Of a stretch of 64,000 bases of DNA, positions 9,336 through 63,834 are shown piece by piece. The translations under genes and the position numbers were made by a program. The notes beneath the pieces were generated by a model that worked only from the letters and a program-made list of their open reading frames with translations, did no database searches and was not told the origin of the DNA. The first letter of the stretch is position 1; the number at the start of each line of letters is the position of its first letter. The stretch covers positions 186,001 to 250,000 of the IMG/VR virus record IMGVR_UViG_3300018080_008436. The stretch is one strand, 5' to 3'.

Positions 9336-9375
9336 GGTAGCAACGATCAATTAAGATCAATAAGGAATTAATAAA

Positions 9376-9450: not shown

Positions 9451-9467
9451 ACATAATCCGATTTACC

Positions 9468-9896: not shown

Positions 9897-9904
9897 CTAA
9901 TGAT

Positions 9905-9981: not shown

Positions 9982-10032
9982 TTTTTTACCACAAATCGTT
10001 CTATTGGTAACATTAATTTGTATAATAAAACT

Positions 10033-11844: not shown

Positions 11845-12200
11845 AACCATTTGAAGAAGTCTTTAAGATGTATCACGACATGGCAGGAGAGTGGAGAATG
11901 AATCTCGACAATCTGGCTTCTCTTCATCCTGACAGTCATATTGTTTTCGGAGCCGAAGAACCTGAATATGTATCAAAAGACTCTGTTATTGAAATGGATG
12001 TTTATCTCGCTGGAGAGAAAATCGGAGTCACAAGAGCCTGCGGAGAATTAGACAATGATGTCATTCGCAGAAATATGATTGGAATGAAAAGAGTCGGAGT
12101 AAAAAATGAGAGTGGTCATCACAATGCTTACTCCACAGGATTTGAGTTAACAGTTGATAAGGATAATAAAAGGATAGATTTAACTCCAAAAAAGTTTTAG
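11841..12200 (+). CDS. hypothetical protein
   Basis: 119-aa ORF whose stop overlaps the first base of tRNA-Cys. Confidence 0.65.
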   Translation: MKPFEEVFKMYHDMAGEWRMNLDNLASLHPDSHIVFGAEEPEYVSKDSVIEMDVYLAGEKIGVTRACGELDNDVIRRNMIGMKRVGVKNESGHHNAYSTGFELTVDKDNKRIDLTPKKF

Positions 12201-12319
12201 GTCGCGTAGTGTAATGGCAAGCATCTTATAAAATGAACCTGACATAAGGTTCTCTTCAGCAATAGTTAAAATCGTCTGCAAAACGAAGGGTCTGGGTTCG
12301 AATCCCAGCGCGACCTCCA
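12200..12319 (+). tRNA. tRNA-Cys(GCA) with a 45-nt insert (12228-12272) in the anticodon stem
   Basis: GGTCGCG/CGCGACC, U73, CCA. Removing 12228-12272 gives a perfect TTCGT-CTGCAAA-ACGAA arm. Confidence 0.8.
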
Positions 12320-41863: not shown

Positions 41864-42822
41864 TATGGTGCCGCTCCTTTGTATGGATGTGTTAACGGTA
41901 AATTATCTTCTAGCCCCCATTTCCAAGCAAGATAGCCTTCTAATTTTTGTCTGGTGTCAGTTGTTATATCGTTCTCAATAACGATTATCTCGCAAATGTA
42001 TCCATCCAAACGTTCGGTTGCTCTGTCAGCGACTCCCATTCCTTGAGAAGCGGTATTTGAAGTATTTCCTGCGGTTTGAAATGCTGTTGGCCCAGAAAGC
42101 GTTCCGTCATAAGTCGAATATACTTGTGCATTAGCCCAATCTGCAATAGAAACAAACATATGTGGGTCTGTATCGGTTGTTTGCCAAAAAATTTCTAAAT
42201 AGGAATCACTATCTAATCTTCTACCAGCAGTACCCAGGTCTCCAGCTTCAACCTGATGCTTTAATCTTGTGGAACCACTATTCTGATAAACCTCAAATAG
42301 AATATTTGTCCCAGTAATAACATCCTTCTTGTGAACAGTTAAAATCATAGCAGAAGGAACGTTTTGTAGATAAGCACCCGACCCGATAGCAATACTGTCA
42401 TCTCCATCAAAGTCTATTACATTTAAGCCATTTTGCGTTGTGGCACCAGTAGTTGGCTGTTCGGCACCAGTTCCTTGAGTTAAATGATAATCATTTCCTG
42501 ATTTATCATCCCATTGACTAACACTCCCTCCAGAATCAGTAATGGTATCTGTATCAGCCGCATCATACCAACCTAGCAATGTCAATTCTGCTGGGGTGAA
42601 ACCTCTACTTGATGAGCTACTTGATGAAGATACATTGTTAAAACTTTCAGAACTTTCTGAAGAGCTAGATTCTAAAGCACACTCTAAACAAGAATCGTAA
42701 GTTCCACCTATCTCTGAAGGGTCAGTGTCAACTGGAGCAGTCGTTTCCCCTACAAAAAGATAACATTCTCCATTTATCTTTATTGAAGGTCCCTGATATT
42801 GTTGTAAAATTTTATCTTCCAT
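41863..42822 (-). CDS. shared N-module + LamG-like protein (5 of 6)
   Basis: GWYDAADTDTITDSGGSVSQWDDKSGN. Confidence 0.82.
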   Translation of the reverse strand: MEDKILQQYQGPSIKINGECYLFVGETTAPVDTDPSEIGGTYDSCLECALESSSSESSESFNNVSSSSSSSSRGFTPAELTLLGWYDAADTDTITDSGGSVSQWDDKSGNDYHLTQGTGAEQPTTGATTQNGLNVIDFDGDDSIAIGSGAYLQNVPSAMILTVHKKDVITGTNILFEVYQNSGSTRLKHQVEAGDLGTAGRRLDSDSYLEIFWQTTDTDPHMFVSIADWANAQVYSTYDGTLSGPTAFQTAGNTSNTASQGMGVADRATERLDGYICEIIVIENDITTDTRQKLEGYLAWKWGLEDNLPLTHPYKGAAP

Positions 42823-43787
42823 TATGGTGGCGCTCCTTTATATGGATGATCTGATGGTAAATTATCTTCTAGACTCCATTTCCAGGCCAAATAACCTTCG
42901 AGTTTTTGTCTTGTATCCAAAGTCTCGTCTTCAACAACTATTAACTCCCCAATAGCTCCATCAAAACGTTTATTTCCTCCCCCAACATCTCCATCCCCGA
43001 TCTCAAATAACTGAGTTGTATCATTGGGAATAGAAGTTGGGTTCGTTTGAACAGACTCAGCTTGCTCAACCCCATTCACAAAACATCTAGCATCTCCATA
43101 TGTCCCACCCTGAGGTCTTGTCATTACAGTTATGGTAGGGGTACTAAGAGTTACTGGTGTATATTTGTCATTACCATTATTATATCTCCAAGCCCATCCA
43201 TCAGAACCAACAGACACCTTAATTGAATTTGTGACATTTCCACTAAAACCACACCAACGATCATCTGAAGTTACACTACTATCAACCACTATGACTACGG
43301 CAATCATAACATCAGGGTTAGCTCCAAGACCAAGTCTTGAATTTATAGATAATTCTTTTTGTGGGAAATCTAGAATATTTAACCCATTTATATTTCTTGT
43401 TCCTGTAATTGGTTGATCTGATCCGCTTCCTTGAGTTACATCATAATTATTCCCAGACTTGTCGTCCCATTGACTTACATTTCCACCTGAATCCGTTATG
43501 GTGTCAGAATCTGTTGCGTCCCACCAACCAACAGGACTGACATCTAATGGATTAAACCCTCTACTTGATGAAGAACTGCTAGAAGAAACATTATTAAAAC
43601 TCTCCGAACTGTCTGAGGAACTAGAAGTACTTGATTCCAATGTACACTCAAGACAAGAGTCAAAAACCCCACCTATTTCAGATGGATCTGCATTAATTGC
43701 TTCAGTTGTCTCTTCAACAAATAAATAGCATTGTCCATCTATCTTAACTGAAGCCCCCTGATAATCTTGAAATATCTTAACTGACAT
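42822..43787 (-). CDS. shared N-module + LamG-like protein (4 of 6)
   Basis: Start MSVKIFQDYQG at 43787 (TAATG overlap). Confidence 0.82.
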   Translation of the reverse strand: MSVKIFQDYQGASVKIDGQCYLFVEETTEAINADPSEIGGVFDSCLECTLESSTSSSSDSSESFNNVSSSSSSSSRGFNPLDVSPVGWWDATDSDTITDSGGNVSQWDDKSGNNYDVTQGSGSDQPITGTRNINGLNILDFPQKELSINSRLGLGANPDVMIAVVIVVDSSVTSDDRWCGFSGNVTNSIKVSVGSDGWAWRYNNGNDKYTPVTLSTPTITVMTRPQGGTYGDARCFVNGVEQAESVQTNPTSIPNDTTQLFEIGDGDVGGGNKRFDGAIGELIVVEDETLDTRQKLEGYLAWKWSLEDNLPSDHPYKGAPP

Positions 43788-44668
43788 TATGGAACCCACT
43801 TATTATTCAAATAATTAATCACAGTATCTTGCTCAGAACTTGTCAAATCTTCGTTATAGAAAATCAATTCGCAAAGAGCCATTTTTAAATACCTAACATT
43901 CCCTGAGATAGGATCACCACCTATACGGATGTTGTTATAAACTGATCCTGCAATTGTTGAACCTCTCTGAAACTTAGAAACTTGTATCTGATCAAAAGTA
44001 AAACTAGCTGATGCAACTCCATTAACTTCAAAATCACCATCTGTATAACAAAAATCATTGGCATCATTTGTTGGTCTCCAAGCCGCAACAGTTCCACTAG
44101 CTAGTCGAATGTTACCTCTATCGCCTGCATTTGAGACCAAACCACTACAACATCCAGTATTTGGCTGACCAGACTTTACAATGACTGCCGCAAAGACCCA
44201 CTCCATATCTGTAACATTAATAGAATTCCTTTGCAGAAAATCATTTGAACCATCAAAAGTTAAAGTGTTAAGATTATTTTGAGTTTCCAATTCTGTTTGA
44301 GGCTGATTCGACCCAGTTCCCTGAGTTACATGGAAATTGTTTCCTGATTTATCATCCCATTGACTAACAAATCCACCTGAATCGGTTATAGTGTCCGTAT
44401 CAGATGCGTCATACCACAAAGACAAGCCTGGGATATCATATGGGAAGAAGCCACTTGATGACGAACTGGAAGAAGAAGTATTTCCTATGCTTTCAGAACT
44501 GTCTGAAGAACTTGATTCTAGAGCACACTCTAAACACGAACTAAAAGTCCCACCTACCTCTGATGGATCGGTATCTACTGGAGCAGTTGTTTCTCCTACA
44601 AAAAGATAACACTCTCCGTTTATCTTAATTGAAGGACCTTGATATTCTTGTAAGATTTTATCATCCAT
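43787..44668 (-). CDS. shared N-module + LamG-like protein (3 of 6)
   Basis: Start MDDKILQEYQG at 44668 (TAATG overlap). Confidence 0.82.
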   Translation of the reverse strand: MDDKILQEYQGPSIKINGECYLFVGETTAPVDTDPSEVGGTFSSCLECALESSSSDSSESIGNTSSSSSSSSGFFPYDIPGLSLWYDASDTDTITDSGGFVSQWDDKSGNNFHVTQGTGSNQPQTELETQNNLNTLTFDGSNDFLQRNSINVTDMEWVFAAVIVKSGQPNTGCCSGLVSNAGDRGNIRLASGTVAAWRPTNDANDFCYTDGDFEVNGVASASFTFDQIQVSKFQRGSTIAGSVYNNIRIGGDPISGNVRYLKMALCELIFYNEDLTSSEQDTVINYLNNKWVP

Positions 44669-45534
44669 TATATGCCCCACTTATCAGACAAATAATCTTC
44701 CACTTGTAATCTCTCACTAGTCGTTAAAGCTCTATTGTATATTATTATTTCTCCAATATCACCATTAAAAGTCTCCCCAATACGCAAACTATAATTAGAT
44801 GGGTTGGCAAAATCATTTGTTGTTAAGTCGCTGAACTGGGAGGTTCCATTCATCCAAACATTCTGGCCAACACCATCTTCATTCCTCATGGTAAAATAAT
44901 TCCAGTTATTACCTCCAGTCCAAGACCACTGACACCTTCCTCCAGCACTCCATTCTCCAAAATCGAAATACCCATCACCAGTACTCCACGTCAAGTGACA
45001 TCCAATTCTATTTACTTCTCTTGGATTTGAAAAAATTGGATAGCTTGCTGTAGTTACGCTTCTTTTCTGAACGATGAACATTGTTATATCATCTTGAGGC
45101 CATGTATATGGATCTTTATCCATGTAATCTCCCCCATCCCATCTAATAATATTATTGCCATTTTGAACATTTGTTTGATAGGTTGGTTGTAACGAACCAG
45201 TCCCTTGAGTAACATCATTGTCATTACCTGATTTGTCATCCCATTGACTAACACTGCCAGAGGATTCTGTTATGGTATTAGAATCAGCCGCGTCAAGCCA
45301 CAATTGAATGTCTGCAATATCATATGGGAAGAAACCACTCGAACTGGAAGAAGAACTTGAATCCAACGAACTTGATGAACTTTCTAGAGTACACTCCAAA
45401 CAAGAATCATAGGTCCCTCCAATCTCAGATGGGTCAGCATTAATACTTTCAGTTGTTTCCTCAACAAATATATAACACTGCCCATCGATTTTAACAGAAA
45501 AGCCTTGATAATTTTGAAATATCTTAACTGACAT
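44668..45534 (-). CDS. shared N-module + LamG-like protein (2 of 6)
   Basis: Start MSVKIFQNYQG at 45534 (TGATG overlap). Confidence 0.82.
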   Translation of the reverse strand: MSVKIFQNYQGFSVKIDGQCYIFVEETTESINADPSEIGGTYDSCLECTLESSSSSLDSSSSSSSSGFFPYDIADIQLWLDAADSNTITESSGSVSQWDDKSGNDNDVTQGTGSLQPTYQTNVQNGNNIIRWDGGDYMDKDPYTWPQDDITMFIVQKRSVTTASYPIFSNPREVNRIGCHLTWSTGDGYFDFGEWSAGGRCQWSWTGGNNWNYFTMRNEDGVGQNVWMNGTSQFSDLTTNDFANPSNYSLRIGETFNGDIGEIIIYNRALTTSERLQVEDYLSDKWGI

Positions 45535-46457
45535 CAGATTCCCCACTTATCCATTAAATAATTTTCAACAGTAATTCTTTCACCATCTGTTAAATCTCTA
45601 TCATAAATAACAACTTCTCCACAATAGAACCTGGCATAAGCATTGTTCCCTCGATTAACTCCTAATCTAATTCTACTTGAAAAAAGACTAAAAGTATCAT
45701 TTCTAGTTGAGCCTGTTTGACTACCGTTTAAAAAGGCTTTTTGTTGAGATCCTGTATTCCAAGCTGTAAAAAGATATCTAGTATTATTAACTGGACTTCC
45801 ATATGTTATCTGCCTTTGAGTTGTGGTAGCATCATGATATCTATAGTCCATATTAGCTGACCCTGCAAAACTTAACTGTAATGCTCCAGCAAAATTAAAT
45901 ACATTATGACTACTATATATACCATCATTAGTGTCAAATGGAGAGAACGCAGTAACAGCCATAAAAATTGTAAATGCTCCTGATGGACTTGCAGATAAGT
46001 TTTCCATATCATCATCAACTCCATCAAAAAACATACAGCCAAGGCCATTAAAACCAGAAGAAAGATATTGAGGTTGTTTGGTTCCAGTCCCTTGAGTTAA
46101 ATCCCACCCTCCAGTCCATTTGTCATCAATTTGGGAAATAGATCCTGCTGACTCTGTAATCGTATTAGAATCTGATGCATCATACCAAGCATAAAGGTTG
46201 TTGATGTCATATGGGTAGAAACCACTTGAGGAAGAGCTACTGGAAGAAACATTATTGAAACTCTCAGAACTTTCCGAAGAACTAGAAGTACTTGAAGAAC
46301 TAGACTCTAATTCACATTGAAGACAAGAGTCGTAAATTCCACCAATCTCAGATGGGTCAGCATTAATTGCTTCGGTAGTTTCCTCAACGAATATATAACA
46401 CTGCCCATCGATTTTAACAGAAGAGCCTTGGTAATCTTGAAATATCTTGACTGACAT
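45534..46457 (-). CDS. shared N-module + LamG-like protein (1 of 6)
   Basis: AWYDASD...EVVIYDRDLT...VENYLMDKWG. Confidence 0.82.
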   Translation of the reverse strand: MSVKIFQDYQGSSVKIDGQCYIFVEETTEAINADPSEIGGIYDSCLQCELESSSSSTSSSSESSESFNNVSSSSSSSSGFYPYDINNLYAWYDASDSNTITESAGSISQIDDKWTGGWDLTQGTGTKQPQYLSSGFNGLGCMFFDGVDDDMENLSASPSGAFTIFMAVTAFSPFDTNDGIYSSHNVFNFAGALQLSFAGSANMDYRYHDATTTQRQITYGSPVNNTRYLFTAWNTGSQQKAFLNGSQTGSTRNDTFSLFSSRIRLGVNRGNNAYARFYCGEVVIYDRDLTDGERITVENYLMDKWGI

Positions 46458-46499: not shown

Positions 46500-47217
46500 T
46501 TACCCTCTTAACCCCTTGCTGATTTTGGAATACTCATCATAGATCAGGTTCAATTTCCCTTTCATAATATCTTGGGGTCTGAACTTTTTCTTTATTCTTT
46601 CGTCCTTAACTCTACTCTCAATGAAATTATAGGTTCTAACCCTGGTCCCTCTGCCCATGTCTCCTATTTGCTCTCTACGTTTATTATTATGATCGTTATG
46701 GTCCTTTGCGCCTTGCATGGCGTTAATACGGCTAGTAACGACTGAGAGAGCTATTTGACGGTTTCTGTGCTGATTCTTGGTATTGGCGCAAGCAGATATG
46801 CCAGTAGGCTTATGAGTTATCTTGACATTAGAGGCAGTTCTATTCCTATGTTGACCACCAGGACCTCCACCACAGAAACATTCAATTTCGAAATCAGCCA
46901 TATTTAACTGATATTCGTAACATTCTGTGTATGGAAGAACTGCAACAGCAATAGTAGAGGTATGTCGTCTACCTTTTGACTCTGTGGGGGGACACCTCTG
47001 AACGCGATGTATGCCGCTTTCTAAAGAGAACTTATTGGTGAGATTTTTGCCTGACAACAGGAATGAATATGAAGAAACAGAATGGCTAAAGACAATCCAT
47101 GGAGATGTCTTCTGCCTTACAATACCCTTGGTACATTTTTACCATGTCTACTAAGAAAAGTTTGGAGTCTTCTCCACCTTCTCCAGCTTTGAGTTCGAGT
47201 ACAATTTGTTCTTTCAT
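46500..47217 (-). CDS. RF1-type peptide chain release factor homolog lacking domain 1, joined by a +1 frameshift at CTT-TAG-C (47091-47085)
   Basis: Frame 0 from ATG 47217 (AGGAGG SD): MKEQIVLELKAGEGGEDSKLF...DCL-stop. The +1 frame continues ...ESGIHRVQRCPPTESKGRRHTST (PxT)...GGPGGQHRN (GGQ)...RTYNF. About 238 aa in total. Confidence 0.85.
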
Positions 47218-50450: not shown

Positions 50451-51869
50451 TTAAACTGCTCCACCATCATAAACTGCTCCCCATTCTGATCCAATTGCAG
50501 TTCTCCCTGCTTCAGCGGCACCTCCCGCAGTGTATTTACTGTTGCCGAACGTTGGGATTCCTGCGGCAGGTTTTAACGATTGACCTCCCCATGAAATCAG
50601 AAGTGCATCATAGTTAGCAGTAGACAGGGCATCGTAAGGAGTGCCACGAGCTATTTCTGCCATGAACTCATGTATTACTGTGACGTTAGAAACATCCCAG
50701 TTGCTGAGGTCTTGGTCAAAATTAGGTTGGAACCTAATGGCTTGTTGAATATCAGTAACGCTTGATGTATCCCACACCCCTATCGGCTGATTGAATACGC
50801 CTCTACTGGCTAAAGTTGCACCTAGCATATTTGCCAGTGTTGTCACGTTACCCATGTTTGTAAAGTTTTGGATCGCGCCATTGAATAAAGGACAAGTATT
50901 AAACATACCTGAGCAGTCAGTGACACTATTCATGTCCCAGTTCCAATTTGCGCTTGCGCCTGTCATTCCAGTACATCCTGCGAACATCCATGAACAATCC
51001 GAACACGCCGACAAATCAGGCACATCAGATGCGGTGATTTCAAGGCCACTACAACTCGAAAATGCGTTAGCCATCTGAGGCCACTGATACGTTCCCCACT
51101 GTCGAATTTCTTTGAGCTTTGATGCATATCCCCATCCTGAAATCCAACCAGAAGAAGAAGAGAAGTCAACAGACATTTCATACTCGGTATCTGCGTCAGG
51201 ATAGATATGTTCGATTATAAATCCACCAGTAACCGTTTGTTGGTTTCCATCACCCCAATCAATATATGTTGTGTTAGGGTTACCTATGTAAATTTGAACT
51301 GTTTTATTCTCTCCTGAATCCCACAATGCTTTAAAAAGATCACCCTCAGGGTAAGAACTGCTTGACGAACTTGAAGTTGAACATGGATCATCACAAACCT
51401 CTACAACTTGTCCAACCGAATACTTACTTGCCGCACCTGGCTCAACTAAAGAAATACCAATCCAAAGACCAACATTTATCTCTCCAATATCATTTCCATT
51501 TACACAAACAAAACCTGAAAAAGTATTTAATGGAGAAGTTGATTCAAAGCCTAATACATTTCCTACAATGGTTAATATTGAAACAGTGGCACAACCTTCT
51601 GAACTTGATGAAGAAACATTTTCTTCACTTTCTGAAGAATTGGAACTAGAAGAACTGCTAACATTACCAATTGATTCAGAAGATGATGATTGAGTACTTT
51701 CTGATGAACTTGATTCAATAGCACATTCGAGACAATTATCAAAAACTTCTTCTATTTCGCTTGGGCTTGAATTAACAGAACTAGTTGTTTCACCGATCCA
51801 TTTATAACAAACCCCACCTATTTTAATTGATGCTCCTTGATAATCGTCAAATATTTTTTCTCTACCCAT
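50451..51869 (-). CDS. shared N-module + BspA/DUF285-type repeat protein
   Basis: WDMNSVTDCSGMF, WDTSSVT, NFDQDLSNWDVSNVT repeats. Confidence 0.85.
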   Translation of the reverse strand: MGREKIFDDYQGASIKIGGVCYKWIGETTSSVNSSPSEIEEVFDNCLECAIESSSSESTQSSSSESIGNVSSSSSSNSSESEENVSSSSSEGCATVSILTIVGNVLGFESTSPLNTFSGFVCVNGNDIGEINVGLWIGISLVEPGAASKYSVGQVVEVCDDPCSTSSSSSSSYPEGDLFKALWDSGENKTVQIYIGNPNTTYIDWGDGNQQTVTGGFIIEHIYPDADTEYEMSVDFSSSSGWISGWGYASKLKEIRQWGTYQWPQMANAFSSCSGLEITASDVPDLSACSDCSWMFAGCTGMTGASANWNWDMNSVTDCSGMFNTCPLFNGAIQNFTNMGNVTTLANMLGATLASRGVFNQPIGVWDTSSVTDIQQAIRFQPNFDQDLSNWDVSNVTVIHEFMAEIARGTPYDALSTANYDALLISWGGQSLKPAAGIPTFGNSKYTAGGAAEAGRTAIGSEWGAVYDGGAV

Positions 51870-51944
51870 AAAAAATCTCTCTAGATAATATTGATAAATA
51901 GTTCAATATATATATCTGAGAAACCTTTGGAAAAATAGAGAGTT

Positions 51945-52026
51945 TGGTATGGGGGGTGGGACTTGAACCCACAGAAATTCACTTGTTTATAAGACAAGCC
52001 GCTTAACCAAATTTGCGTACCCCCAC
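51945..52026 (-). tRNA. tRNA-Ile(TAT)
   Basis: CTTGT-CTTATAA-ACAAG; 9-nt variable region; A73; CCA. Confidence 0.85.
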
Positions 52027-52042
52027 ACAGGTAAGAAGTTTT

Positions 52043-52149
52043 GGGGAGGTGGGGAGGCTCACTGGGGTAAGTGGCTTCTTATTATATTGCCGTCCATTGT
52101 GTCAGCCCGTTCTCCTTCTAACGGGTGTTTCCGATGACATGGCATCCCC
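52043..52149 (-). ncRNA. unidentified structured RNA between tRNA-Val and tRNA-Ile
   Basis: Closing GGGGA/TCCCC helix; nested CCAT-TGTCA..TGACA-ATGG and CCCGTT/AACGGG stems; second hairpin GAAGCCACT/AGTGAGCCTC. GC-rich within an AT-rich context. Confidence 0.5.
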
Positions 52150-52151
52150 TT

Positions 52152-52228
52152 TGGTGGGCAGTACAGGACTCGAACCTGTCACGACCTCGGTGTAAACGAG
52201 GCATTCTAGCCAAATGAATTAACTGCCC
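52152..52228 (-). tRNA. tRNA-Val(TAC)
   Basis: CCTCG-TTTACAC-CGAGG; CCA. Confidence 0.93.
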
Positions 52229-52259
52229 AGTAAAATCATATTCGAAATACTTCTTTCAT

Positions 52260-52287
52260 ATTATAACCTAAATTTCCTTTAGTTCAA
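52260..52287 (-). promoter_or_regulatory. internal promoter upstream of tRNA-Val/ncRNA/tRNA-Ile
   Basis: TTGAAC-16 nt-TATAAT. Confidence 0.65.
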
Positions 52288-52292
52288 CAAAC

Positions 52293-52373
52293 AAGCTGAT
52301 TTATTTTTTGAAGGGTTTGAACCTTCTAGATGGTGTAAGCATCGTTAACCTGTTTTTTGCTGTAATCAGCCTT
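52293..52373 (-). ncRNA. small RNA with end-pairing stem, ACAGCAA motif and a T-arm
   Basis: AGGCTGATT/AATCAGCTT stem; internal GAAGG-TTCAAAC-CCTTC. Confidence 0.55.
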
Positions 52374-52379
52374 TATTTT

Positions 52380-52456
52380 TGGTGGACCTACACGGATTCG
52401 AACCGAGATTTCCTCCCTGCCAGAGAGGTGTGTTAGCCATTAGTCACTATAAGCCC
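52380..52456 (-). tRNA. tRNA-Ala(GGC)
   Basis: CCTCT-CTGGCAG-GGAGG; G3.U70; CCA. Confidence 0.88.
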
Positions 52457-52490
52457 TTTTTGTTTCATAACTCGTTGATAATTAACGACT

Positions 52491-52569
52491 TGGTGGAGAC
52501 GGTCGGAATCGAACCGACCACATGCTGGTTGCAAACCAGTATCGCCAAAGCCTTGGTACATGCGCCCCC
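52491..52569 (-). tRNA. tRNA-Ala(TGC), atypical D arm
   Basis: CTGG-TTTGCAA-CCAG; G3.U70; CCA. Confidence 0.82.
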
Positions 52570-52574
52570 AAGTT

Positions 52575-52820
52575 TTAAACGCCTAATTCGTTATCCTCAA
52601 AAAACACAACATCCGAAATCGGTTCTAGTCTTTCGTATGTCTCATTCCATATTTCAATTTCTTCATCCGTCAATGCAACCTTGTCATTTTTACAGTTCCA
52701 TCGATCTTTGTCTGGACACCAACAACTGCCTTCTGCATGTATCCATTGTGCCATGCATTTCTCAAACATTTTCTTGTAATCTACGTTGTCTTCCATCGTC
52801 TGTCTCCAGTATCTGGTCAT
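52575..52820 (-). CDS. hypothetical protein within the tRNA cluster
   Basis: 81 aa; may start at MEDNVDY. Confidence 0.5.
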   Translation of the reverse strand: MTRYWRQTMEDNVDYKKMFEKCMAQWIHAEGSCWCPDKDRWNCKNDKVALTDEEIEIWNETYERLEPISDVVFFEDNELGV

Positions 52821-52861
52821 TTATACGGACATCATGGCCACATAAATGGCCACATAAGTCT

Positions 52862-52938
52862 TGGTGGAGCATAAGAGACTCGAACTCTTGACATCCTGCT
52901 TGCAAAGCAGGTGCTCTAGCCATCTGAGCTAATGCCCC
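52862..52938 (-). tRNA. tRNA-Ala(TGC)
   Basis: Canonical GGGGCATTAGCTCAG...CCTGC-TTTGCAA-GCAGG; G3.U70; CCA. Confidence 0.95.
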
Positions 52939-52999
52939 AAAATACGGGATACCTAAGCATTGCCCGTTTTTGAATGGATGTCGAAACATTGCCATTCTT

Positions 53000-53092
53000 T
53001 GGTGGAGAAGATTGGAGTCGAACCAATTAAAATTGTTTGCCGAAGAGAGCCTTATAACAAGCTCAGTTTGCCCTCCGCAGGGCATCTTCTCC
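53000..53092 (-). ncRNA. tRNA-like RNA lacking a canonical anticodon arm
   Basis: GGAGAAG/CTTCTCC acceptor, GCCCT-GCGG-AGGGC arm, ATTGG-TTCGACT-CCAAT T arm, ACCA; the centre is the hairpin+TCTTCGGCAA element. Confidence 0.65.
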
Positions 53093-53129
53093 AGTTGTTT
53101 TAGAACTCTGTTCGTTAAAACATCGTTCT

Positions 53130-53206
53130 TGGTAGTTGGGACAGGACTCGAACCTGCATCCTCCGATATGTAAAAACGGTGCTCCGCGCAATTAAGCTAC
53201 CCAACC
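53130..53206 (-). tRNA. tRNA-Val(TAC)
   Basis: Loop TTTACAT, one stem mismatch; CCA. Confidence 0.8.
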
Positions 53207-53232
53207 AACAATAATAAATTGTAAAAGATCAC

Positions 53233-53263
53233 AAAAAAAGCCCTGTCATTTCTGACAGGGCTT
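53233..53263 (-). terminator. attenuator terminator C
   Basis: AAGCCCTGTCA-GAAA-TGACAGGGCTT-TTTTT. Confidence 0.92.
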
Positions 53264-53285
53264 AAACCGACTTCTGGAAACTACA

Positions 53286-53372
53286 TCATCCAGAAAGAGC
53301 AGAAAAGCCCTGCCCGTCTGCGACTACCGCGACGGCTACTACTGCTATGGCTATTTCTACTCTCTTTTTCAT
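53286..53372 (-). CDS. putative attenuator leader peptide MKKRVEIAIAVVAVAVVADGQGFSALSG
   Basis: GGAG SD 9 nt upstream; 13 of codons 5-18 are Val/Ala/Ile; both Ile codons are ATA. Confidence 0.88.
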   Translation of the reverse strand: MKKRVEIAIAVVAVAVVADGQGFSALSG

Positions 53373-53400
53373 AAAACATATCTCCAGTTACGTTGCCCCT

Positions 53401-53428
53401 ATTATAAGGCATCTATTTGGCTTTTCAA
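53401..53428 (-). promoter_or_regulatory. promoter of the Val/Ala/Ile tRNA operon
   Basis: TTGAAA-AGCCAAATAGATGCCT-TATAAT. Confidence 0.85.
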
Positions 53429-53453
53429 GCTCGAATCGAAAATAAATTCGTCT

Positions 53454-57300: not shown

Positions 57301-58041
57301 TTACCTTTGGATATTTGGCCCACCCCTATCATGATTGAGATGATATTGAGGAAGAACATTTAACGGTCTTCTGCCACCCATATGAACTCTAAACTGTCGG
57401 TCAGATTTCGTTCTTCTCCAAACATCTCTAAGTCTGTGGCAGTATCTCCCTACTTTCGTTCCATCTTCCTGAACATCACCCTTCTCTTTGATTGCCTCAA
57501 CTCTTGCCAATTGAAAATATCCAGCACAGGTTTTTCTTCCGCTAATCCATTTCTTTGGCCAATCTTTGGGAATTTGAGCCACATCCTCGATTACACAAGG
57601 ATAAACTCTCTCGTCATTTTCGAAATATTCTATGCAAAAGGGAATATCTAAAGAATGACGATCAGCCCCAAGAACTTTTGTTTCGTCTTTATAATCATCA
57701 CTCTCTAGCTTCTTCTTAATATCATCAAAAAACATTGGATCATACACCATATCAGAATCGGCAAACAAAATCCAATCAGCTTCTGTTGCTCCTGCCCTCA
57801 TATTTCGAGGAATAGCCCTATTAGGAGCCTGTTTAGGGGTCAATTCGACATCAAGTATGTTCAAACCCTTTTCTTTAAAAAAATCAATAACCTGAGGAGT
57901 TGTTGGATCTCCATTTTCAGGGGTATAAGAAATGCTAACCAGTATGTCTGGTATATCTCCTTTCTGTTGCAATATCGAACTGAGCATCCAACACAATCTT
58001 CGTTGATATGAATGACAATGTATACAAATTTCTAATTTCAT
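57301..58041 (-). CDS. GT-A (family 2-like) glycosyltransferase
   Basis: RN..A......DWILFADSDMVY (DxD); GYFQL. Confidence 0.75.
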   Translation of the reverse strand: MKLEICIHCHSYQRRLCWMLSSILQQKGDIPDILVSISYTPENGDPTTPQVIDFFKEKGLNILDVELTPKQAPNRAIPRNMRAGATEADWILFADSDMVYDPMFFDDIKKKLESDDYKDETKVLGADRHSLDIPFCIEYFENDERVYPCVIEDVAQIPKDWPKKWISGRKTCAGYFQLARVEAIKEKGDVQEDGTKVGRYCHRLRDVWRRTKSDRQFRVHMGGRRPLNVLPQYHLNHDRGGPNIQR

Positions 58042-58050
58042 AAAAACTCC

Positions 58051-58719
58051 TTAAGCTTTAACAAACCACCAAGATCTGATTACACCTCCAACAGCATGGA
58101 TCTTATAACCATATCTCGCTCCATAATAATCTACTACCGTTTTGACATGATAATCCAAACCTCTCCCCCAATAATCTTTCATGCCAGAATTCTCACCATC
58201 TTTATAATCATGACCTGCTACCACTCCACCCGTTCTAACTTTAGGAGTCCATGCATAGATATCATTAAATATTCCTTCCAAACTGTGGTCGCCATCGATG
58301 TATACAAAATCAAGAAGGCCATCTGGGATTTCCTGATAAACCTCAATACTAAATGCCTTGACTAATTCAACCCTTCCAGCATCAATAAATTCTTTCAGAT
58401 GATTCTCACAATCTTTTTGTCGATTACTTCCATCCTTGTCATACTTTTCTTTCCCATAACCAGATCCAAAATCATCAATCCATGGATCAATACAATAGTA
58501 TTTCTGCAAATCTGATTTAGAAACCATGTGGTGAGAAAACGTCCCCTTGTCAACCCCTATTTCTGCTCCGAATTGATATTTCATATCTTTGCAAAGCTTA
58601 GGAAAAAAGTGATCTCGGTACTTATTTTTTCCTTTCTCTTTAAGGATCTTACTCGCGACTTCTTCAACTTGATTGATTATTTGTTCATTCCTGTACTTCA
58701 CCATAGAAAACTCCAGCAT
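58051..58719 (-). CDS. class I SAM methyltransferase (Methyltransf_24-like)
   Basis: GAEIGVDKG, YCIDPW, DFVYIDGDHS, GGVVAGHDY; start uncertain (58719 or 58704). Confidence 0.88.
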   Translation of the reverse strand: MLEFSMVKYRNEQIINQVEEVASKILKEKGKNKYRDHFFPKLCKDMKYQFGAEIGVDKGTFSHHMVSKSDLQKYYCIDPWIDDFGSGYGKEKYDKDGSNRQKDCENHLKEFIDAGRVELVKAFSIEVYQEIPDGLLDFVYIDGDHSLEGIFNDIYAWTPKVRTGGVVAGHDYKDGENSGMKDYWGRGLDYHVKTVVDYYGARYGYKIHAVGGVIRSWWFVKA

Positions 58720-58736
58720 TATTGTATTCGAATTTA

Positions 58737-59528
58737 TTATACAGTTTCGTCGTAGATCCCACCCCATCCATTTGGGTTGGCCTTATAGGGTCTTGTCCCC
58801 CTCATCGCCTTGGTAAGAATCTTCTTGTTCTTCTCCTGACAAGCCAGATCATTTTTTAAATTTGGCTTAGAATGTGGTTGATGAAAAAGATTTATGCTTT
58901 CCATTGTCTCTCCAAGCCAAATAACCTTGGCTCCTGATCGCCCCATTCTTGTAAAAAGATCAAAATCTTCAGAACCCCACCCTACAAAAGCTTCATCAAA
59001 ACCTCCGACTTTATGCCATTGATCAATGTGAGCACACTGACAGCCGCCAGCAGTAGTTCTTTTTTTGATTCTCCCCCGTCTACATGAAGCTAAATTTTCG
59101 AATGGGTCAAGTCTCCCTTTGTATATCTGATTAGCTATTTTTGGTTTCCAATACATAGTCCTAGACTCAATGAAAACATTTGGAGCAACTCTCTTCAAAA
59201 TCTCATCAACAAAAGTTGGCCCGAAAAAGATATCAACATCAGTGGTCATGATGTATGGAGTTCTAGCATTTCTAATTCCCACATTGTTCATCTTCGCTCT
59301 TTCAAATTCTTCCCCAAGAGGCTCTTGAACAATTCTAATCAATGGTTCGCATTCTCTGGATTCAAAAAACTTCTTAAGTTCATCATAATTCTTACTCCCA
59401 CCATCAGCTATAACCACCTCAAAATCTTTATTGGTTTGCTTTTCTAATGATAATAAGAAAAACTTTGTGATATTCTTTTTAAGGTCTAACCGATCCCTAT
59501 TAGAAGCGGCTATAGTCAAGGTTTTCAT
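58737..59528 (-). CDS. family 2 / galactosyltransferase-type glycosyltransferase
   Basis: FEVVIADGGS, NVGIRNA, TDVD, GGFDEAFVGWGSEDFDL, FHQPH. Confidence 0.9.
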   Translation of the reverse strand: MKTLTIAASNRDRLDLKKNITKFFLLSLEKQTNKDFEVVIADGGSKNYDELKKFFESRECEPLIRIVQEPLGEEFERAKMNNVGIRNARTPYIMTTDVDIFFGPTFVDEILKRVAPNVFIESRTMYWKPKIANQIYKGRLDPFENLASCRRGRIKKRTTAGGCQCAHIDQWHKVGGFDEAFVGWGSEDFDLFTRMGRSGAKVIWLGETMESINLFHQPHSKPNLKNDLACQEKNKKILTKAMRGTRPYKANPNGWGGIYDETV

Positions 59529-60262
59529 TACTTCTCCTTTGGCGGGGCGTATCTATACGATGGAAGTCCCTGATAGTGTATAAAATGAACTCTTTTGGAA
59601 TTAATCTCTTTCTTTGTATATGAAGAATACTTCCATAAATTGCAAAATTCTGGCTCATGCAGTTCCCAGTATTTCTCTTGTCCCATCCATCCTCCAGATC
59701 TACGATCCATCGCCCTTGCAAGTGGAGGCTCCGCTGAATTCCCAGGTTTCTTTTCCCAACATTCTATGATCTCATCTGGGAAGGTCTTATCTCTAATGTA
59801 AAGGAATCCTGCATTAGGAAGCTTTCTGGTATCCTTCTTGCCTCTCCAGAAACATTTCCTGCGCTTATATTGCTGTAAATTAGCTTGACAGTATTCCTTC
59901 TTCCCCATAACTTCCCAGAAATCATTCGGCAATGCTTTTTTTGCGTGACAATCCCAATCAATAAACACAATCTCATCATAATCTTCCATGGCTATCTTTA
60001 AAATATCCAATTTATGTCGATATTGATTAGAAGACAAATCATATGGATGTGGATCTTTGTCCAGAAGAACCAAATTATCCATTGAAAATCTATCCCTGAG
60101 ATGATTATAATTCTCTTCTCCGAATATATAGGTTACAAATGGTGCTGTGAATGGATTCTTCAGAGTTTTATTGATATCATATTCCATCTTATAACGTCTT
60201 TCCACAACCCTATTCTCTCTTGAGAAAATCCCCCACAGTCCTCTTATAAATGCTCTTTTCAT
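59528..60262 (-). CDS. putative GT-A sugar transferase (paralog family, 4 copies)
   Basis: KRAFIRGLWG...YRHKLDIL...DEIVFIDWD...NAGF. Confidence 0.65.
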   Translation of the reverse strand: MKRAFIRGLWGIFSRENRVVERRYKMEYDINKTLKNPFTAPFVTYIFGEENYNHLRDRFSMDNLVLLDKDPHPYDLSSNQYRHKLDILKIAMEDYDEIVFIDWDCHAKKALPNDFWEVMGKKEYCQANLQQYKRRKCFWRGKKDTRKLPNAGFLYIRDKTFPDEIIECWEKKPGNSAEPPLARAMDRRSGGWMGQEKYWELHEPEFCNLWKYSSYTKKEINSKRVHFIHYQGLPSYRYAPPKEK

Positions 60263-60273
60263 AAGTTTCTCCT

Positions 60274-61005
60274 TTACCAACCAACCCTCAATCTTCTGTG
60301 GACCTGTTTTTTATTTAAGTGTTTGAAGCACCTGTTTTTTGATGCATATTGTTCTTTGGAAAATACCTTGCACTCATCTAGATAGAAAAAATCAGGCTCA
60401 AAATTATTCCAATACTCTTCCATACCTTGCCATCCACCGAGAAGATCATCTGTGTATTTTGCAATAACTCTTTCTTCAGACCATGGCCTACCCATATCTT
60501 CCCATAACTGCAATAGATCCTCTGCCACTTTCTTCTCTCTACAATAGACAAAACTAGCACAAGGGATCATCTTCAAATTTTCAGTTCTCCACTTGGCTTT
60601 TCTTCTTTTGTAAGATCGAAGTATAGCTTGTAGAGGTTGCTTTTTGCTAAGGACTTCCCAGAAATCTTCTGGCAATCTTTTGATTGGATATGTGTCCCAA
60701 TCAAGAAATACAACTTCATCAAATTCCTGCATACCTTGATAAAGAACCTCCAACTTATGTCTGAACTGTTCTGTATCTATATCCCAGACAATCGGCCTCT
60801 TATCGACCAGTTTCGCGTTAAAACCCTCATCTACCAGGAACTTATAGTTATCTTCCCCAAATACATAAGCGGTAAAAGGCTCGTTCCATGGATTCGCTTT
60901 CAAAACCTTAATGTCGTTATCTATTTTGGAGCGCCTTTTATATAAACGACGACCTTGATGGTCATGAATGCCCCACAAACCTCTTATAAAGCCTCTTTTC
61001 ATCAA
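60274..61005 (-). CDS. putative GT-A sugar transferase (paralog)
   Basis: RGFIRGLWG...FRHKLE...VFLDWD. Confidence 0.65.
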   Translation of the reverse strand: MMKRGFIRGLWGIHDHQGRRLYKRRSKIDNDIKVLKANPWNEPFTAYVFGEDNYKFLVDEGFNAKLVDKRPIVWDIDTEQFRHKLEVLYQGMQEFDEVVFLDWDTYPIKRLPEDFWEVLSKKQPLQAILRSYKRRKAKWRTENLKMIPCASFVYCREKKVAEDLLQLWEDMGRPWSEERVIAKYTDDLLGGWQGMEEYWNNFEPDFFYLDECKVFSKEQYASKNRCFKHLNKKQVHRRLRVGW

Positions 61006-61006
61006 C

Positions 61007-61567
61007 TTAATCCTTATCTAAATCACTTACTTTGAAAAGCCAACTAGTATCAATGAATTTCTTATGTGGTATCCCTAAAACTTCATGAACAGCCTTCCTA
61101 ACAGAATCTCTCTTAATATCATGGCCAGTAATATATCCAGTTTTCTTGACTTTTGGCAACCACTTTATAATATCATTCTTAACGGCTTCATATTGATGGT
61201 TGCCGTCAATATATACCAAATCTAAGCTCTCATCTTCGAACTTATCAACTGCCTCATCTCCAGGCATTTTGTATTTTTTAAGTTTATCTTTGTGTGGAGC
61301 CATTTTTTGATCGAACATCTTCTCTACAAGCTCCATTGGCCTGCTTTTAGAAGCGCCATCACTATCATCATAACCATTCTGCCAAGGGTCAATGGCATGA
61401 ATCATTTTGATATTATTGTCAGATGCAAAAATTGACGTACTATCTCCTGAATAACAACCAATTTCTACCATAACAATATCTTTCATATCACTAACGTATT
61501 TAATCATATTCTTAAGGCCGTTTATGAGTTTGGCCTTTCTTCGCATTATATTCCTACTCATTTCCAA
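61007..61567 (-). CDS. class I SAM methyltransferase (Methyltransf_24-like)
   Basis: VEIGCYSGDST, AIDPW, DLVYIDGNH, GYITGHD. Confidence 0.88.
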   Translation of the reverse strand: MEMSRNIMRRKAKLINGLKNMIKYVSDMKDIVMVEIGCYSGDSTSIFASDNNIKMIHAIDPWQNGYDDSDGASKSRPMELVEKMFDQKMAPHKDKLKKYKMPGDEAVDKFEDESLDLVYIDGNHQYEAVKNDIIKWLPKVKKTGYITGHDIKRDSVRKAVHEVLGIPHKKFIDTSWLFKVSDLDKD

Positions 61568-62289
61568 CCTCTCTTTAATCTACCAGCAACCTGCTTTTGG
61601 TTTAGGTGCTTGAAACATCTGTTCTTTGTTTTATATTGCTCTCTTGAGAACAAAATACATTCATCTAGATAGAAGAAATCAGGCTCGAAGTTATCCCAAT
61701 AAACATCCATACCCTGCCAACCACCTAAAGCCTCATCCATGTATCGTGCCATAATTATTTCTTCAGACCATGGTCTACCTCTTTGCTCCCACATTTCACA
61801 AAGTCTTTCAGTAACAGCCTTATCTCTACAATAAACAAAGCTTGCGCAAGGAACTTTTCTCTGCTCATCTTTTCGCCATGTAGCTTTCTTTCTGTGGTAA
61901 ATACGTAAAATAGCCTGAAACGATCTTTTCTTGCCAAGAACTTCCCAAAAATCCTTTGGTAATGGTTTCGTTGGTAATGTATCCCAGTCAAGGAATACCA
62001 TCTCATCGAAATCATTCATCCCTTGATCGAATGCTTCAAGTTTATGTCTGAATTGCTCTTTTTCCATATCCCAGACAATTGGTTTCTTATCGACCAATCT
62101 GGAATCAATCCCTTCGTCCAAAAGATACTTATGATTGTCCTCTCCAAAAGTATAACAAACATAAGGCTCGTTCCAGGGATTCATCTTAAGTAGTTTAATG
62201 TCATTATCAATTTTAGAACGTCTTTTATAGAGGCGACGACCCTGATGATCATGAATCCCCCATAGACTTCTTACAAAACCTCTCTTCAT
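61558..62289 (-). CDS. putative GT-A sugar transferase (close paralog of 60274)
   Basis: Identical stretch LWGIHDHQGRRLYKRRSKIDNDIK. Confidence 0.65.
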   Translation of the reverse strand: MKRGFVRSLWGIHDHQGRRLYKRRSKIDNDIKLLKMNPWNEPYVCYTFGEDNHKYLLDEGIDSRLVDKKPIVWDMEKEQFRHKLEAFDQGMNDFDEMVFLDWDTLPTKPLPKDFWEVLGKKRSFQAILRIYHRKKATWRKDEQRKVPCASFVYCRDKAVTERLCEMWEQRGRPWSEEIIMARYMDEALGGWQGMDVYWDNFEPDFFYLDECILFSREQYKTKNRCFKHLNQKQVAGRLKRGWK

Positions 62290-62299
62290 TATTTATACC

Positions 62300-63046
62300 T
62301 CATAGTAAATGTAAAAAACATGATTTCTTTCCATCTAACATGGTTTGTGAATAGACGGATTTTCTTCTTAAATTGCAAACCTCTGGCTCAAACAAATTCC
62401 AGTAGACTTCTGAACCACACCAACCACCACAGAAATCATCAATGTATTTAGACATTGCAGGTTCATCATCAAAAATCAAACTTTTTTCTCGGAACCGAAG
62501 TTCCAATCCTCTTTTCTGTCTTTCCGCCTGCTTTTCGTCAACCCATTTATGAAGGCCATCCCATATATCTATCATCTTTTCTGGGATAGAATCATCTCTA
62601 AAATAGGCGAATCCTCCATTACAAACTTTTCTAAGATCTGTTTCTCTCCAAAGGCACTTTTTAGTCCTATATTGGAATAGGTTAGCCTGGAAGGACTCTT
62701 TTTTACCCAATTCGTCCCAAACATAGTCGAATTTATCAGTTGGCACACAATCCCAATCGAGAAAAGCAATCTCATCAAAATAATTGAATGCGATATGAAA
62801 AATCTCTAGTTTATGACGGTACATCTCCGTTTCAAGATCCCACATGGTTGGGAATGTATTTACGCAGATGGAGTTAAAGCCATTATCTTCCAGCCATTTG
62901 TGGTTCTCATGCCCAAACGTAAATATCGTAAACCAATCTCGTTCTTTGGTTTCAAGAATTTCCTTTTGGATTTTACCGTTACGATGTTTCCAAACATCGC
63001 CCCACAAACCTCTTATGAATGCTCTCCTTACAGTGGACATTCCCAT
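62300..63046 (-). CDS. putative GT-A sugar transferase (paralog)
   Basis: RRAFIRGLWG...YRHKLEI...DEIAFLDWD...NGGF. Confidence 0.65.
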   Translation of the reverse strand: MGMSTVRRAFIRGLWGDVWKHRNGKIQKEILETKERDWFTIFTFGHENHKWLEDNGFNSICVNTFPTMWDLETEMYRHKLEIFHIAFNYFDEIAFLDWDCVPTDKFDYVWDELGKKESFQANLFQYRTKKCLWRETDLRKVCNGGFAYFRDDSIPEKMIDIWDGLHKWVDEKQAERQKRGLELRFREKSLIFDDEPAMSKYIDDFCGGWCGSEVYWNLFEPEVCNLRRKSVYSQTMLDGKKSCFLHLL

Positions 63047-63834
63047 CCAAGCTCCTCAGATAACTCTTTCAGTTCATCATTTTGAGTTAATTTGACGAAA
63101 CGATTGTCGTCTTTGACAGTTTCCCATCTTTTGAGAACATTCATCGACTGGGCATCCTTCTTTTTCTTCATTCCGTCAAAACTACTTCCCCATGATCTCC
63201 CATGACCTATCTTCATGACTGTATTCAATCGACTATCATCTTCTTTGAGGTCAAGAATTGTTTCCAACAACCTTCTGTACTGTGGATCTGAAAACCATTC
63301 ATCATATTTAAGAACAACCTTATGTTCAAAATTCTGAGTCTTGTTCAGACATTCTTTGGCCATTTTTATCCACATTTTTGAGAAACTATTTGGATTTGAC
63401 AAAAGTCTGTTCCTACCCCAGTTTAATACACTAGCATATTGGTTATATGGGTCTCGTATTACAAGGACATTATCTCTTCGTTTACTAAACTCATCCAGTC
63501 CATATTGTTGACAGAAATAATGTTTCTGCTCTCGAATCTCTGGGTTGAGTCCAATATCGAATACTGTAAACTCCGTTCCGAGAATGATCGCACTTGGCTT
63601 GGAATTTCCAACCTCATCATAATGAGTCAGTTCCTTATATCCCAACTCATCTTTAGTAAAAGCCCAAAAAGGGATTTCAAAACCAACCATCTTGCCTTTC
63701 TTTCTGCCAAGCTGAGACATACAGTTCTTATAAACAACTGAATCAAAATGACCTATAAGCCAAGATGTGATTGCATGCTGTCCAGTTCTCTGTACTCCCA
63801 CTACATGAATTTCTCTATCAGTTGCGTAATTCAT
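63028..63834 (-). CDS. sulfotransferase-like protein
   Basis: VVGVQRTGQHAI (5'-PSB-like) and VIRDPYNQYAS (3'-PB-like); LKYDEW. Confidence 0.7.
   Translation of the reverse strand: MNYATDREIHVVGVQRTGQHAITSWLIGHFDSVVYKNCMSQLGRKKGKMVGFEIPFWAFTKDELGYKELTHYDEVGNSKPSAIILGTEFTVFDIGLNPEIREQKHYFCQQYGLDEFSKRRDNVLVIRDPYNQYASVLNWGRNRLLSNPNSFSKMWIKMAKECLNKTQNFEHKVVLKYDEWFSDPQYRRLLETILDLKEDDSRLNTVMKIGHGRSWGSSFDGMKKKKDAQSMNVLKRWETVKDDNRFVKLTQNDELKELSEELGWECPL

Follow-up and report, generated by a model that had tools for sequence, protein, structure and literature searches.

Background

In Escherichia coli, the ilvGMEDA and ilvBN operons are preceded by attenuator leaders (ilvL and ivbL, respectively) with a promoter, a Shine-Dalgarno (SD) sequence, a short open reading frame (ORF) containing a run of Val and Ile codons (with Ala or Leu), a 1:2 hairpin, an intrinsic terminator and an antiterminator that overlaps the 5' arm of this terminator. 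Here we describe the same set of elements in phage DNA, in a leader which we call unit C and which lies at positions 53233-53428, on the minus strand, of a 64-kb stretch (positions 186,001 to 250,000 of the IMG/VR record IMGVR_UViG_3300018080_008436; the whole stretch is referred to as the window). Unit C stands in front of a cluster of transfer RNA (tRNA) genes for Val, Ala and Ile, and we compare it with six further units of this genome (A, B and D to G). As in ilvL and ivbL, which are multivalent (Ile/Val/Leu), a single leader would sense several amino acids. The present units differ from both in that they would gate tRNAs and not biosynthetic enzymes, are phage-borne, carry codons that follow the downstream isoacceptors, and share no sequence or Rfam homology with them.

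Leader-peptide attenuators such as trpL, hisL and ilvL respond to the level of charged tRNA, and the likeness of unit C to trpL, hisL, thrL, pheL and pheM (of pheST) is that the stalling of a ribosome at cognate codons would decide on termination. Closest in logic is pheM, by which a component of translation, the Phe-tRNA synthetase, is controlled by charged tRNA-Phe, and of which unit E would be the counterpart in this phage. However, the units described here have the tRNA itself as output, which would make a direct feedback loop, and two of them (D and E) possess tandem terminators with a possible relay, both in contrast to pheM and its kin. T-box riboswitches, too, monitor a specific tRNA by means of a leader RNA in front of an intrinsic terminator, and the genes under their control are likewise related to translation, but they bind uncharged tRNA via one specifier codon and a conserved motif and do so without translation, whereas the present units contain a translatable ORF.

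None of the Rfam leader families (Thr_leader, His_leader, Leu_leader, Trp_leader, Phe_leader and others) matched: the whole window searched at the gathering score gave only tRNA and transfer-messenger RNA (tmRNA), and a permissive scan of 51850-53450 gave no leader family and no T-box (RF00230). Unit C has all structural hallmarks of the leader-peptide attenuator class, the differences being its tRNA targets, its phage home and its isoacceptor-matched codons. The genes behind it, tRNAs for the sensed amino acids and an ORF of 81 amino acids (aa), fall outside the biosynthesis, transport and synthetase genes by which the class is otherwise recognised. Searches of the full-text literature turned up no account of tRNA genes controlled by leader-peptide attenuation. 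An attenuator-like leader before the E. coli tRNA-Phe gene pheV was considered and not supported, as K-12 has only about 100 nucleotides (nt) upstream of that gene and no Phe-rich ORF there.

Why phages carry tRNAs is debated: they may serve to match codon usage, to replace a host pool that decays, or to evade anticodon nucleases. The tRNA arrays of large phages (T4, T5, KVP40-like and huge phages) resemble the present ones in their clustered tRNAs, interspersed homing-endonuclease ORFs and tRNA repair enzymes. The clusters in the other tRNA-bearing phage loci that we compared are of mixed specificity, whereas in this phage they are sorted by amino acid and each appears to be gated. Among those other loci, an upstream terminator was found at 3 of 65 tRNAs, each time with a promoter-like, TATA-rich stretch before the tRNA, and none abutted its tRNA with a matched leader.

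Anatomy of unit C

An initial annotation, made without database searches, had claimed an attenuator at the position of unit C, and its parts are all there: promoter, SD, leader ORF and terminator, on the minus strand. The promoter (53428-53401) is a near-consensus sigma-70 promoter with 11 of 12 matches, in which a 16-nt spacer separates the -35 box TTGAAA (53428-53423) from the -10 box TATAAT (53406-53401). The SD sequence GGAGA (53385-53381) lies 8 nt 5' of the ATG of the leader ORF (53372-53286), which comprises 28 codons and a TGA stop and reads MKKRVEIAIAVVAVAVVADGQGFSALSG. Its codons include GTA (four times), GTC, GCC, GCA and ATA (twice each) and GCG (once), in agreement with the codons listed in the initial annotation, and its regulatory run extends from V5 to A18 (53360-53319). 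Val, Ala and Ile account for 14 of 27 residues, against a background of 15% in the proteins of the window (P = 8e-6). An alternative frame (MFYEKESR...) has its ATG only 1 nt after the SD, compared with 8-10 nt for the proposed ATG in all seven leaders.

The leader RNA contains the four regions of a classical attenuator. Region 1 (AGAGAGUAGAAAUAGCC, 53365-53349) is the partner of region 2 when the ribosome is absent, as found in the minimum free energy (MFE) structure. Region 2 (53315-53294) has two overlapping parts, of which the 3' part (GGCUUUUCUGCUCUUU, 53309-53294) forms the 1:2 hairpin with region 1, and the 5' part (GGGCAGGGCUUU, 53315-53304) forms the antiterminator (2:3) with the 5' arm of the terminator, a duplex of -18.1 kcal/mol (p = 0.0005-0.002 against shuffled sequences). 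Regions 3 and 4 constitute the intrinsic terminator (53263-53233), a hairpin at 53263-53238 with a perfect stem of 11 base pairs (AAGCCCTGTCA-GAAA-TGACAGGGCTT), followed by a U-tract to 53233; written out, the two regions read AAGCCCUGUCA-GAAA-UGACAGGGCUU, with -19 kcal/mol. Only 26 nt lie between this terminator and the first tRNA, tRNA-Val(UAC) (53206). The MFE of the leader RNA is -63.2 kcal/mol (z = -4.2 against shuffles), with a long 1:2 hairpin and the terminator as its fold. Both the MFE fold and the duplex energies against shuffles show the 1:2 and 2:3 pairings of the initial annotation, and the 3:4 terminator, to be correct. Unit C has every anatomical feature of a leader-peptide transcription attenuator before a Val/Ala/Ile tRNA cluster.

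Seven units of one design

The interpretation as an attenuator is supported both by this full anatomy and by six more cluster-matched units of the same design in the genome. The source replicon is the IMG/VR contig 3300018080_008436 (476 kb), which has also been assembled as 524,692 bp (JGI) and 523,871 bp (ENA), that is, a phage of about 524 kb. Units A, B and C lie inside the window, while D, E, F and G lie outside it and were obtained by scanning with a relaxed promoter pattern and by walking along the contig; an L-number precedes coordinates outside the window. The arrangement of promoter, SD and short ORF is present in all seven. The extended promoter type is cTTGAAAAGC-N11-CTTATAAT, then aGGGGcAAC, and its pattern occurs at exactly three sites in the window, all of them at leader units, where 0.15 are expected. 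An SD pentamer is situated 8-9 nt 5' of the ATG in leaders A to E (background 7% for any SD-like pentamer) and 10 nt 5' of it in leaders F and G.

Unit A (9308-9500, plus strand) has its promoter at 9308-9335, its leader ORF at 9376-9450 (MSVQVQQNNQNNQALEGFGRLFSA), the antiterminator segment at 9417-9430 and the terminator at 9468-9497 plus U-tract. Directly abutting it, from 9503, are tRNAs Gln(CUG), Asn(GUU) (two copies) and Gln(UUG) (two copies), and Gln and Asn make up 9 of the 23 residues of its leader (P = 1e-4; such enrichment values were computed for leaders A, B, C and F). Unit B (38115-37882, minus strand) consists of a promoter at 38115-38088, a leader ORF at 38015-37938 (MYATTKTTKTTKTTKKRVASGGLLS), an antiterminator segment at 37963-37953 and a terminator at 37914-37888 plus U-tract; behind it (37873-36350) follow Thr(GGU), Thr(CGU), Thr(UGU), Lys(UUU), Lys(CUU) and again Lys(UUU), with Thr and Lys at 13 of 24 leader residues (P = 3e-7).

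Outside the window, the leader of unit D (L032; MNNYMYIREPEREEPPAFGRRSADL, starting with MNNYMYIREPEREEPP) precedes Glu(UUC) in two copies, Glu(CUC), Pro(UGG) in two copies and Pro(GGG), and that of unit E (L036; MNNLNNIFRFFSHL, MNNLNNIFRFF...) precedes two genes for Phe(GAA). Unit F (L198 8370-8634), with the leader MNVVRDMHIIRRDWSHRASDLRYRMF (starting with MNVVRDMHIIRRDWSHR), stands before Arg (CCU, UCU, ACG, UCG), Trp, Ile(GAU) (twice), Val(GAC), Asp (twice), Met and His; the enrichment of its leader for the amino acids of this cluster gives P = 1e-6. The Asp, Met and His tRNAs had for a time been taken for an ungated mixed cluster, which was rejected when further sequence identified them as the distal members of cluster F, placed after its leader. 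Unit G (L203 ~3345-3545), with the leader MKSLSLSLCSSYLSLRWTGLCVQRT (starting with MKSLSLSLCSSYLSL), precedes Cys (twice), Tyr (twice), Leu (UAA, GAG, CAA and two of UAG) and Ser (two of GCU, CGA, UGA, GGA). Altogether, about 60 tRNA genes called by ARAGORN, with 37 anticodon species for 19 amino acids, would be gated by the seven units, and every leader is rich in the amino acids of the cluster that it precedes; neither a Gly unit nor a Gly tRNA was seen in the approximately 150 kb of genome walked.

The distance from the U-tract to the first tRNA is 2-30 nt in six of the seven units, so that their tRNAs would arise only by read-through (and processing). Only in unit G is the distance from terminator to first tRNA larger, namely about 130 nt. 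The spacer of unit G (L203 3545-3668, plus strand) contains a palindrome in two copies, TTACCGAGCGGTAA and TTACCGAACGGGAA, which may be a protein-binding site or form RNA hairpins.

A further feature of the leader promoters is a G-rich stretch (TATAATaGGGGcAAC) directly after the -10 box in five of the seven (in the window at 9336-9344, 38087-38079 and 53400-53392). It is similar to the GC-rich discriminator found in stable-RNA promoters under stringent control, and by this analogy one may speculate that, if functional, it would hold the units off in true amino-acid starvation.

Leader codons and the clusters behind them

All leaders were scored against all clusters under standard wobble rules, over 5040 permutations. 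The true leader-cluster pairing gives the highest codon-anticodon total of all permutations, with a diagonal sum of 3.24 and a mean of 0.97. A cognate codon is present in the own leader for 34 of 37 tRNA species, leaders B and G have at least one codon for each Thr, Lys, Leu and Ser isoacceptor behind them, and the cognate codons form a single contiguous block in every leader.

The initial annotation had gone further and claimed a match at codon level, in that leader C uses only ATA for Ile and the cluster encodes tRNA-Ile(UAU). Taken from leader C alone, this claim is weak: ATA is used at both Ile positions (p = 0.08, ATA being 28% of the Ile codons in the window) and GTA at four of the six Val positions (p ~0.08). 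It does hold when leaders C and F are contrasted. Leader F, before Ile(GAU) and Val(GAC), has ATT ATT and GTT GTT, whereas leader C, before Ile(UAU) and Val(UAC), has ATA ATA, four GTA and no GTT, although GTT makes up 55% of Val codons, and 10 of the 12 informative codons are cognate to the own cluster where 5.2 are expected (P = 0.0034). Codon choice in the leaders follows the isoacceptors encoded downstream, a point settled by the contrast with leader F.

The Arg codon CGA is found within the regulatory runs of leaders D (E-P-E-R-E-E-P-P, with CGA twice) and E (F-R-F-F), despite the lack of any Arg tRNA in clusters D and E. A deliberately slow codon is one possibility, a cross-link to the Arg(UCG) of cluster F another.

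Alternative RNA pairings

Each of the seven units contains a segment complementary to the 5' arm of its terminator, with duplex energies of -13 to -20 kcal/mol (p = 0.0003-0.005 each). The segment is located at nt 41-70 of the leader ORF or, in the short leader E, just past the stop codon. The sequences of the helices vary between units while the pairing architecture is kept, and this sequence change with kept pairing among the seven units is the only form of covariation on hand. A 1:2 hairpin overlapping the regulatory codons was found in units A, B, C and E.

The effect of a ribosome was approximated by an equilibrium folding model, in which 28 nt were masked around each A-site codon, the transcript was folded up to the terminator loop, and the probability that the 5' arm of the terminator is paired was read out. 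In this model the 5' arm is tied up while the ribosome occupies the regulatory codons and is released once it has passed. In unit E the probability is 0.01 with no ribosome, 0.96 with the ribosome on the regulatory codons and 0.01 with the ribosome further on. The corresponding values are 0.38, 0.8-0.9 (ribosome on codons 2-15) and 0.26-0.5 for unit C, 0.52, about 0.9 and about 0.5 for unit G, and 0.98, 0.98 and about 0.4 for unit D.

Units D (L032 ~2470-2730, minus strand) and E (L036 ~7340-7581, minus strand) have two tandem terminators each. In D the 3' arm of the first terminator (GGGAGGGC) and the 5' arm of the second (GCCCUCU) are complementary, as are the corresponding arms in E (GUCGGGG and CCCCGAC), and the tandem terminators would by such pairing relay antitermination from the first to the second.

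Proposed mechanism and its alternatives

We consider unit C very likely to be a ribosome-mediated leader-peptide transcription attenuator that controls tRNA genes. Its anatomy, the pairings and the matching of amino acids and codons can be read from the sequence; translation of the leader, the switching itself and the physiological signal are what we infer. In the proposed mechanism, the sigma-70 RNA polymerase of the host would start at about 53394 and a ribosome would translate the 28-codon leader. With fast decoding of GUA, GCN and AUA, the ribosome would come to cover region 2, the 3:4 terminator would form and transcription would stop 26 nt before the first tRNA. With slow decoding, the ribosome would be stalled on the regulatory run and cover region 1, and region 2 would take the 5' arm of the terminator; the antiterminator so formed would allow read-through into Val(UAC), Ala(UGC), Ala(GGC), Val(UAC) and Ile(UAU). 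After charging, the tRNAs so made would speed up translation of the leader and shut the unit off again. The outcome would be an on-demand supply of tRNA under negative feedback, with each leader sampling the codons of its own cluster.

The signal is probably a shortage of usable tRNA, caused by long infection or by loss or cleavage of host tRNA, rather than amino-acid starvation. As the output is tRNA, which cures a lack of tRNA and not a lack of amino acids, and as the codons track the isoacceptors, decoding capacity is the likeliest quantity to be sensed. For the genome as a whole we lean towards a decoding-capacity regulon, in which the seven leaders would act as codon samplers, each switching on its own cluster when those isoacceptors run short, with the tRNAs then limiting their own production. 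The shortage could stem from decay of host tRNA in a long infection, from cleavage by defence nucleases or from codon-usage mismatch; these triggers look alike on the sequence and cannot be told apart by it.

If this is true, unit C and its sister units would be the first case of tRNA genes under leader-peptide attenuation. They would also show directly that a phage keeps its tRNAs in order to close gaps which it measures in the host pool. The attenuation known from textbooks for trp, his and ilv would extend to stable RNA genes and to a virus. The regulatory logic would be legible in the DNA, each cluster being wired to be made when ribosomes slow on its own codons, and the phage would provide seven natural, orthogonal, codon-specific sensors of tRNA availability, which could serve as tools. 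The amino-acid-sorted tRNA clusters of other large phages would be worth screening for the same design.

Several points weigh against this reading. The function of the units is deduced from sequence, all evidence comes from one phage lineage whose assemblies are 100% identical over the units, and the grounds for taking the replicon as a phage are its IMG/VR label and a small number of PHROG hits. Three tRNA species, Glu(CUC), Pro(GGG) and Arg(UCG), go without a cognate codon in the leader before them, and GTC, used twice in leader C, is non-cognate to Val(UAC) under standard wobble. As regards folding, the antiterminator of units A, D and F is favoured even without a ribosome (in a transcript lacking region 4), and with the ribosome on the stop codon it forms again in A, C, F and G. 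Since the folding model is not clean in every unit, the decision would have to rest on co-transcriptional order, kinetics and sterics, as in classical attenuators. Lastly, attenuators sense aminoacyl-tRNA, and sequence cannot separate a shortage of tRNA from one of amino acids.

The same machinery could answer to amino-acid starvation, as in trp, his and ilv, and make more tRNA when amino acids are scarce. The sequence is compatible with it, and leader-peptide attenuators answer to charged tRNA, which drops in starvation. Extra tRNA, however, is no remedy for a missing amino acid, which leaves the output mismatched to the input; the use of ATA versus ATT and of GTA versus GTT in leaders C and F tracks the downstream isoacceptor, which is needless for sensing an amino acid; and leaders B and G sample all Thr, Lys, Leu and Ser isoacceptors, as expected for the sensing of tRNA species. 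We regard starvation as an improbable signal. The units might also be alarm switches against host anticodon nucleases or other tRNA-depleting defences, off normally and on when host tRNAs are cut, which would be a special case of the tRNA-shortage reading favoured here. T4 counters tRNA cleavage by PrrC with Pnk and Rnl, and this genome encodes RtcB, a PNKP-like enzyme, tmRNA and an RF-1-domain, rescue-factor-like protein, a classic repair and rescue set against tRNA cleavage; furthermore, Lys, Thr, Asn and Gln are the amino acids of the units that were found first, and tRNAs for Lys, Thr and Asn are known targets of anticodon nucleases. Yet the units extend to all 19 amino acids, beyond the known nuclease targets, which a general control of supply fits better, and no defence or anti-defence gene was identified beside them. 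We accept the alarm switch as a tentative, rather doubtful possibility.

The two remaining explanations dispense with the leader peptide. The units could be coincidental combinations of untranslated ORFs, ordinary terminators of upstream genes and tRNAs with promoters of their own. AT-rich DNA abounds in short ORFs and in hairpins that look like terminators (in 20 kb, 25 such sites were counted where 13 are expected), and where other phages have a terminator ahead of a tRNA, a separate promoter comes after it. Such a coincidence is extremely improbable in view of the match of all seven leaders to their clusters (the true pairing ranking first of 5040), a near-constant SD spacing of 8-10 nt in all seven, antiterminator complementarity at p <= 0.005 in all seven, a dedicated extended promoter found only at these units, and the lack of room for a promoter between U-tract and first tRNA in six of them. 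The leaders could, alternatively, bind tRNA directly as RNA without being translated, given that T-box leaders too precede an intrinsic terminator and match their tRNA by a codon-like triplet. Against this stand the lack of any T-box or other cis-regulatory Rfam match (in the window at the gathering score and in the permissive scan of unit C) and the triplets themselves, of which there are 3-18 and not one specifier, all sharing one frame from an ATG with SD to a stop codon; hence we give hardly any credence to T-box-like binding.

The tRNA cluster behind unit C

Cluster C (51945-53206, minus strand) contains Val(UAC) twice, Ala(UGC), Ala(GGC) and Ile(UAU), on which ARAGORN and Rfam agree. This is the list of the initial annotation except for its second Ala(UGC), which turned out to be a degenerate tRNA-like gene. 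In the direction of transcription, all on the minus strand, the cluster comprises tRNA-Val(UAC) (53206-53130), an odd tRNA-like gene of 91 nt (53093-53003), tRNA-Ala(UGC) (52938-52862), the 81-aa ORF (52820-52575), the degenerate tRNA-Ala(UGC)-like gene (52569-52491, called at a relaxed threshold only), tRNA-Ala(GGC) (52456-52380), the second tRNA-Val(UAC) (52228-52152) and, last, tRNA-Ile(UAU) (52026-51945). The degenerate gene retains a G3:U70 pair and a UGC anticodon loop and has a poor or aberrant D-arm; it is not matched by the tRNA model, and the tmRNA model matches at its ends only. The 81-aa ORF is Cys-rich, without a Pfam match, and probably starts at the ATG at 52796, which follows a GGAGA; judging by its position it would share the control by attenuator C with the tRNAs.

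The initial annotation had also proposed an internal promoter between Ala(GGC) and the second Val(UAC). A promoter-like match, TTGAAC-16-TATAAT, does exist there (52287-52260, minus strand) with 10 of 12 positions, but it is at chance level, four such sites having been found against 6.4 expected in shuffled sequence, and it is without the extended features of the leader promoters.

The odd gene of 91 nt is one of four long tRNA-like genes, the others being located at 12200-12319 (plus strand), 9772-9897 (plus strand) and L203 6075-6198 (plus strand). All four have normal acceptor and T arms and, as a further common element, a covarying hairpin (GARYYU-loop UG..AUAA-ARRYUC) with UCUUCRGCAA after it. 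In Rfam, one of them is recognised as tRNA at 40 bits and another as a weak tRNA-Sec. The intron readings given by ARAGORN were mutually inconsistent and were not adopted. One of the four directly precedes RtcB, and in light of this neighbourhood the odd genes might be intron-bearing tRNAs or tRNAs with a UCA anticodon (opal-reading or Sec-like).

Relatives and genome context

Comparison of the locus and the leader with 50,697 phage records by megablast and blastn gave generic tRNA similarity only. Queries with neighbouring proteins (the 186-aa upstream ORF, RtcB, IF3 and a 402-aa ORF) led only back to the same phage or to unrelated phages that carry RtcB and lack units of this kind. Scans of IMG/VR viral contigs with the promoter pattern recovered this phage only; a metagenome scan yielded only chance promoters among the matches listed, and a scan of the GTDB genome collection only chance promoters.

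The genome carries several genes related to translation. These are a tmRNA (6972-7352, minus strand) with the tag AKKVIEFPTASAVAA and its own TTGACT-16-TATAAT promoter, the RNA ligase RtcB (12412-13680, plus strand), the RF-1-domain protein, which is ArfB-like and rescue-factor-like (46500-47057, minus strand), the PNKP-like kinase/phosphatase (L200 2579-4006) and IF3 (L030 2215-2727). To judge from their sequences, they fit a kit for damaged or scarce translation components.

ORFs of homing-endonuclease type occur in or beside the tRNA clusters, with tRNA genes on both sides, at 9904-10776 (plus strand), 36440-37315 (minus strand), L030 20163-20834 and L201 5833-6852. The kinds represented are HNH, DUF559/Vsr-like with a helix-turn-helix (HTH), an HTH ORF and LAGLIDADG.

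A full-length homologue of LpxR (lipid A 3'-O-deacylase; 15354-16334, plus strand; Pfam E = 4e-102) is unusual for a phage, and its similarity suggests a Gram-negative host. Two tandem arrays of paralogues occupy the minus strand at 40877-46457 and 57301-63834. One has six members of about 300 aa each, and the member tested (40877-41863) matches a virion structural protein PHROG; the other has nine members of about 245 aa each. A large block of genes for glycosyltransferases, methyltransferases, NeuB and sulfotransferases is located beyond the window (L199, L200).

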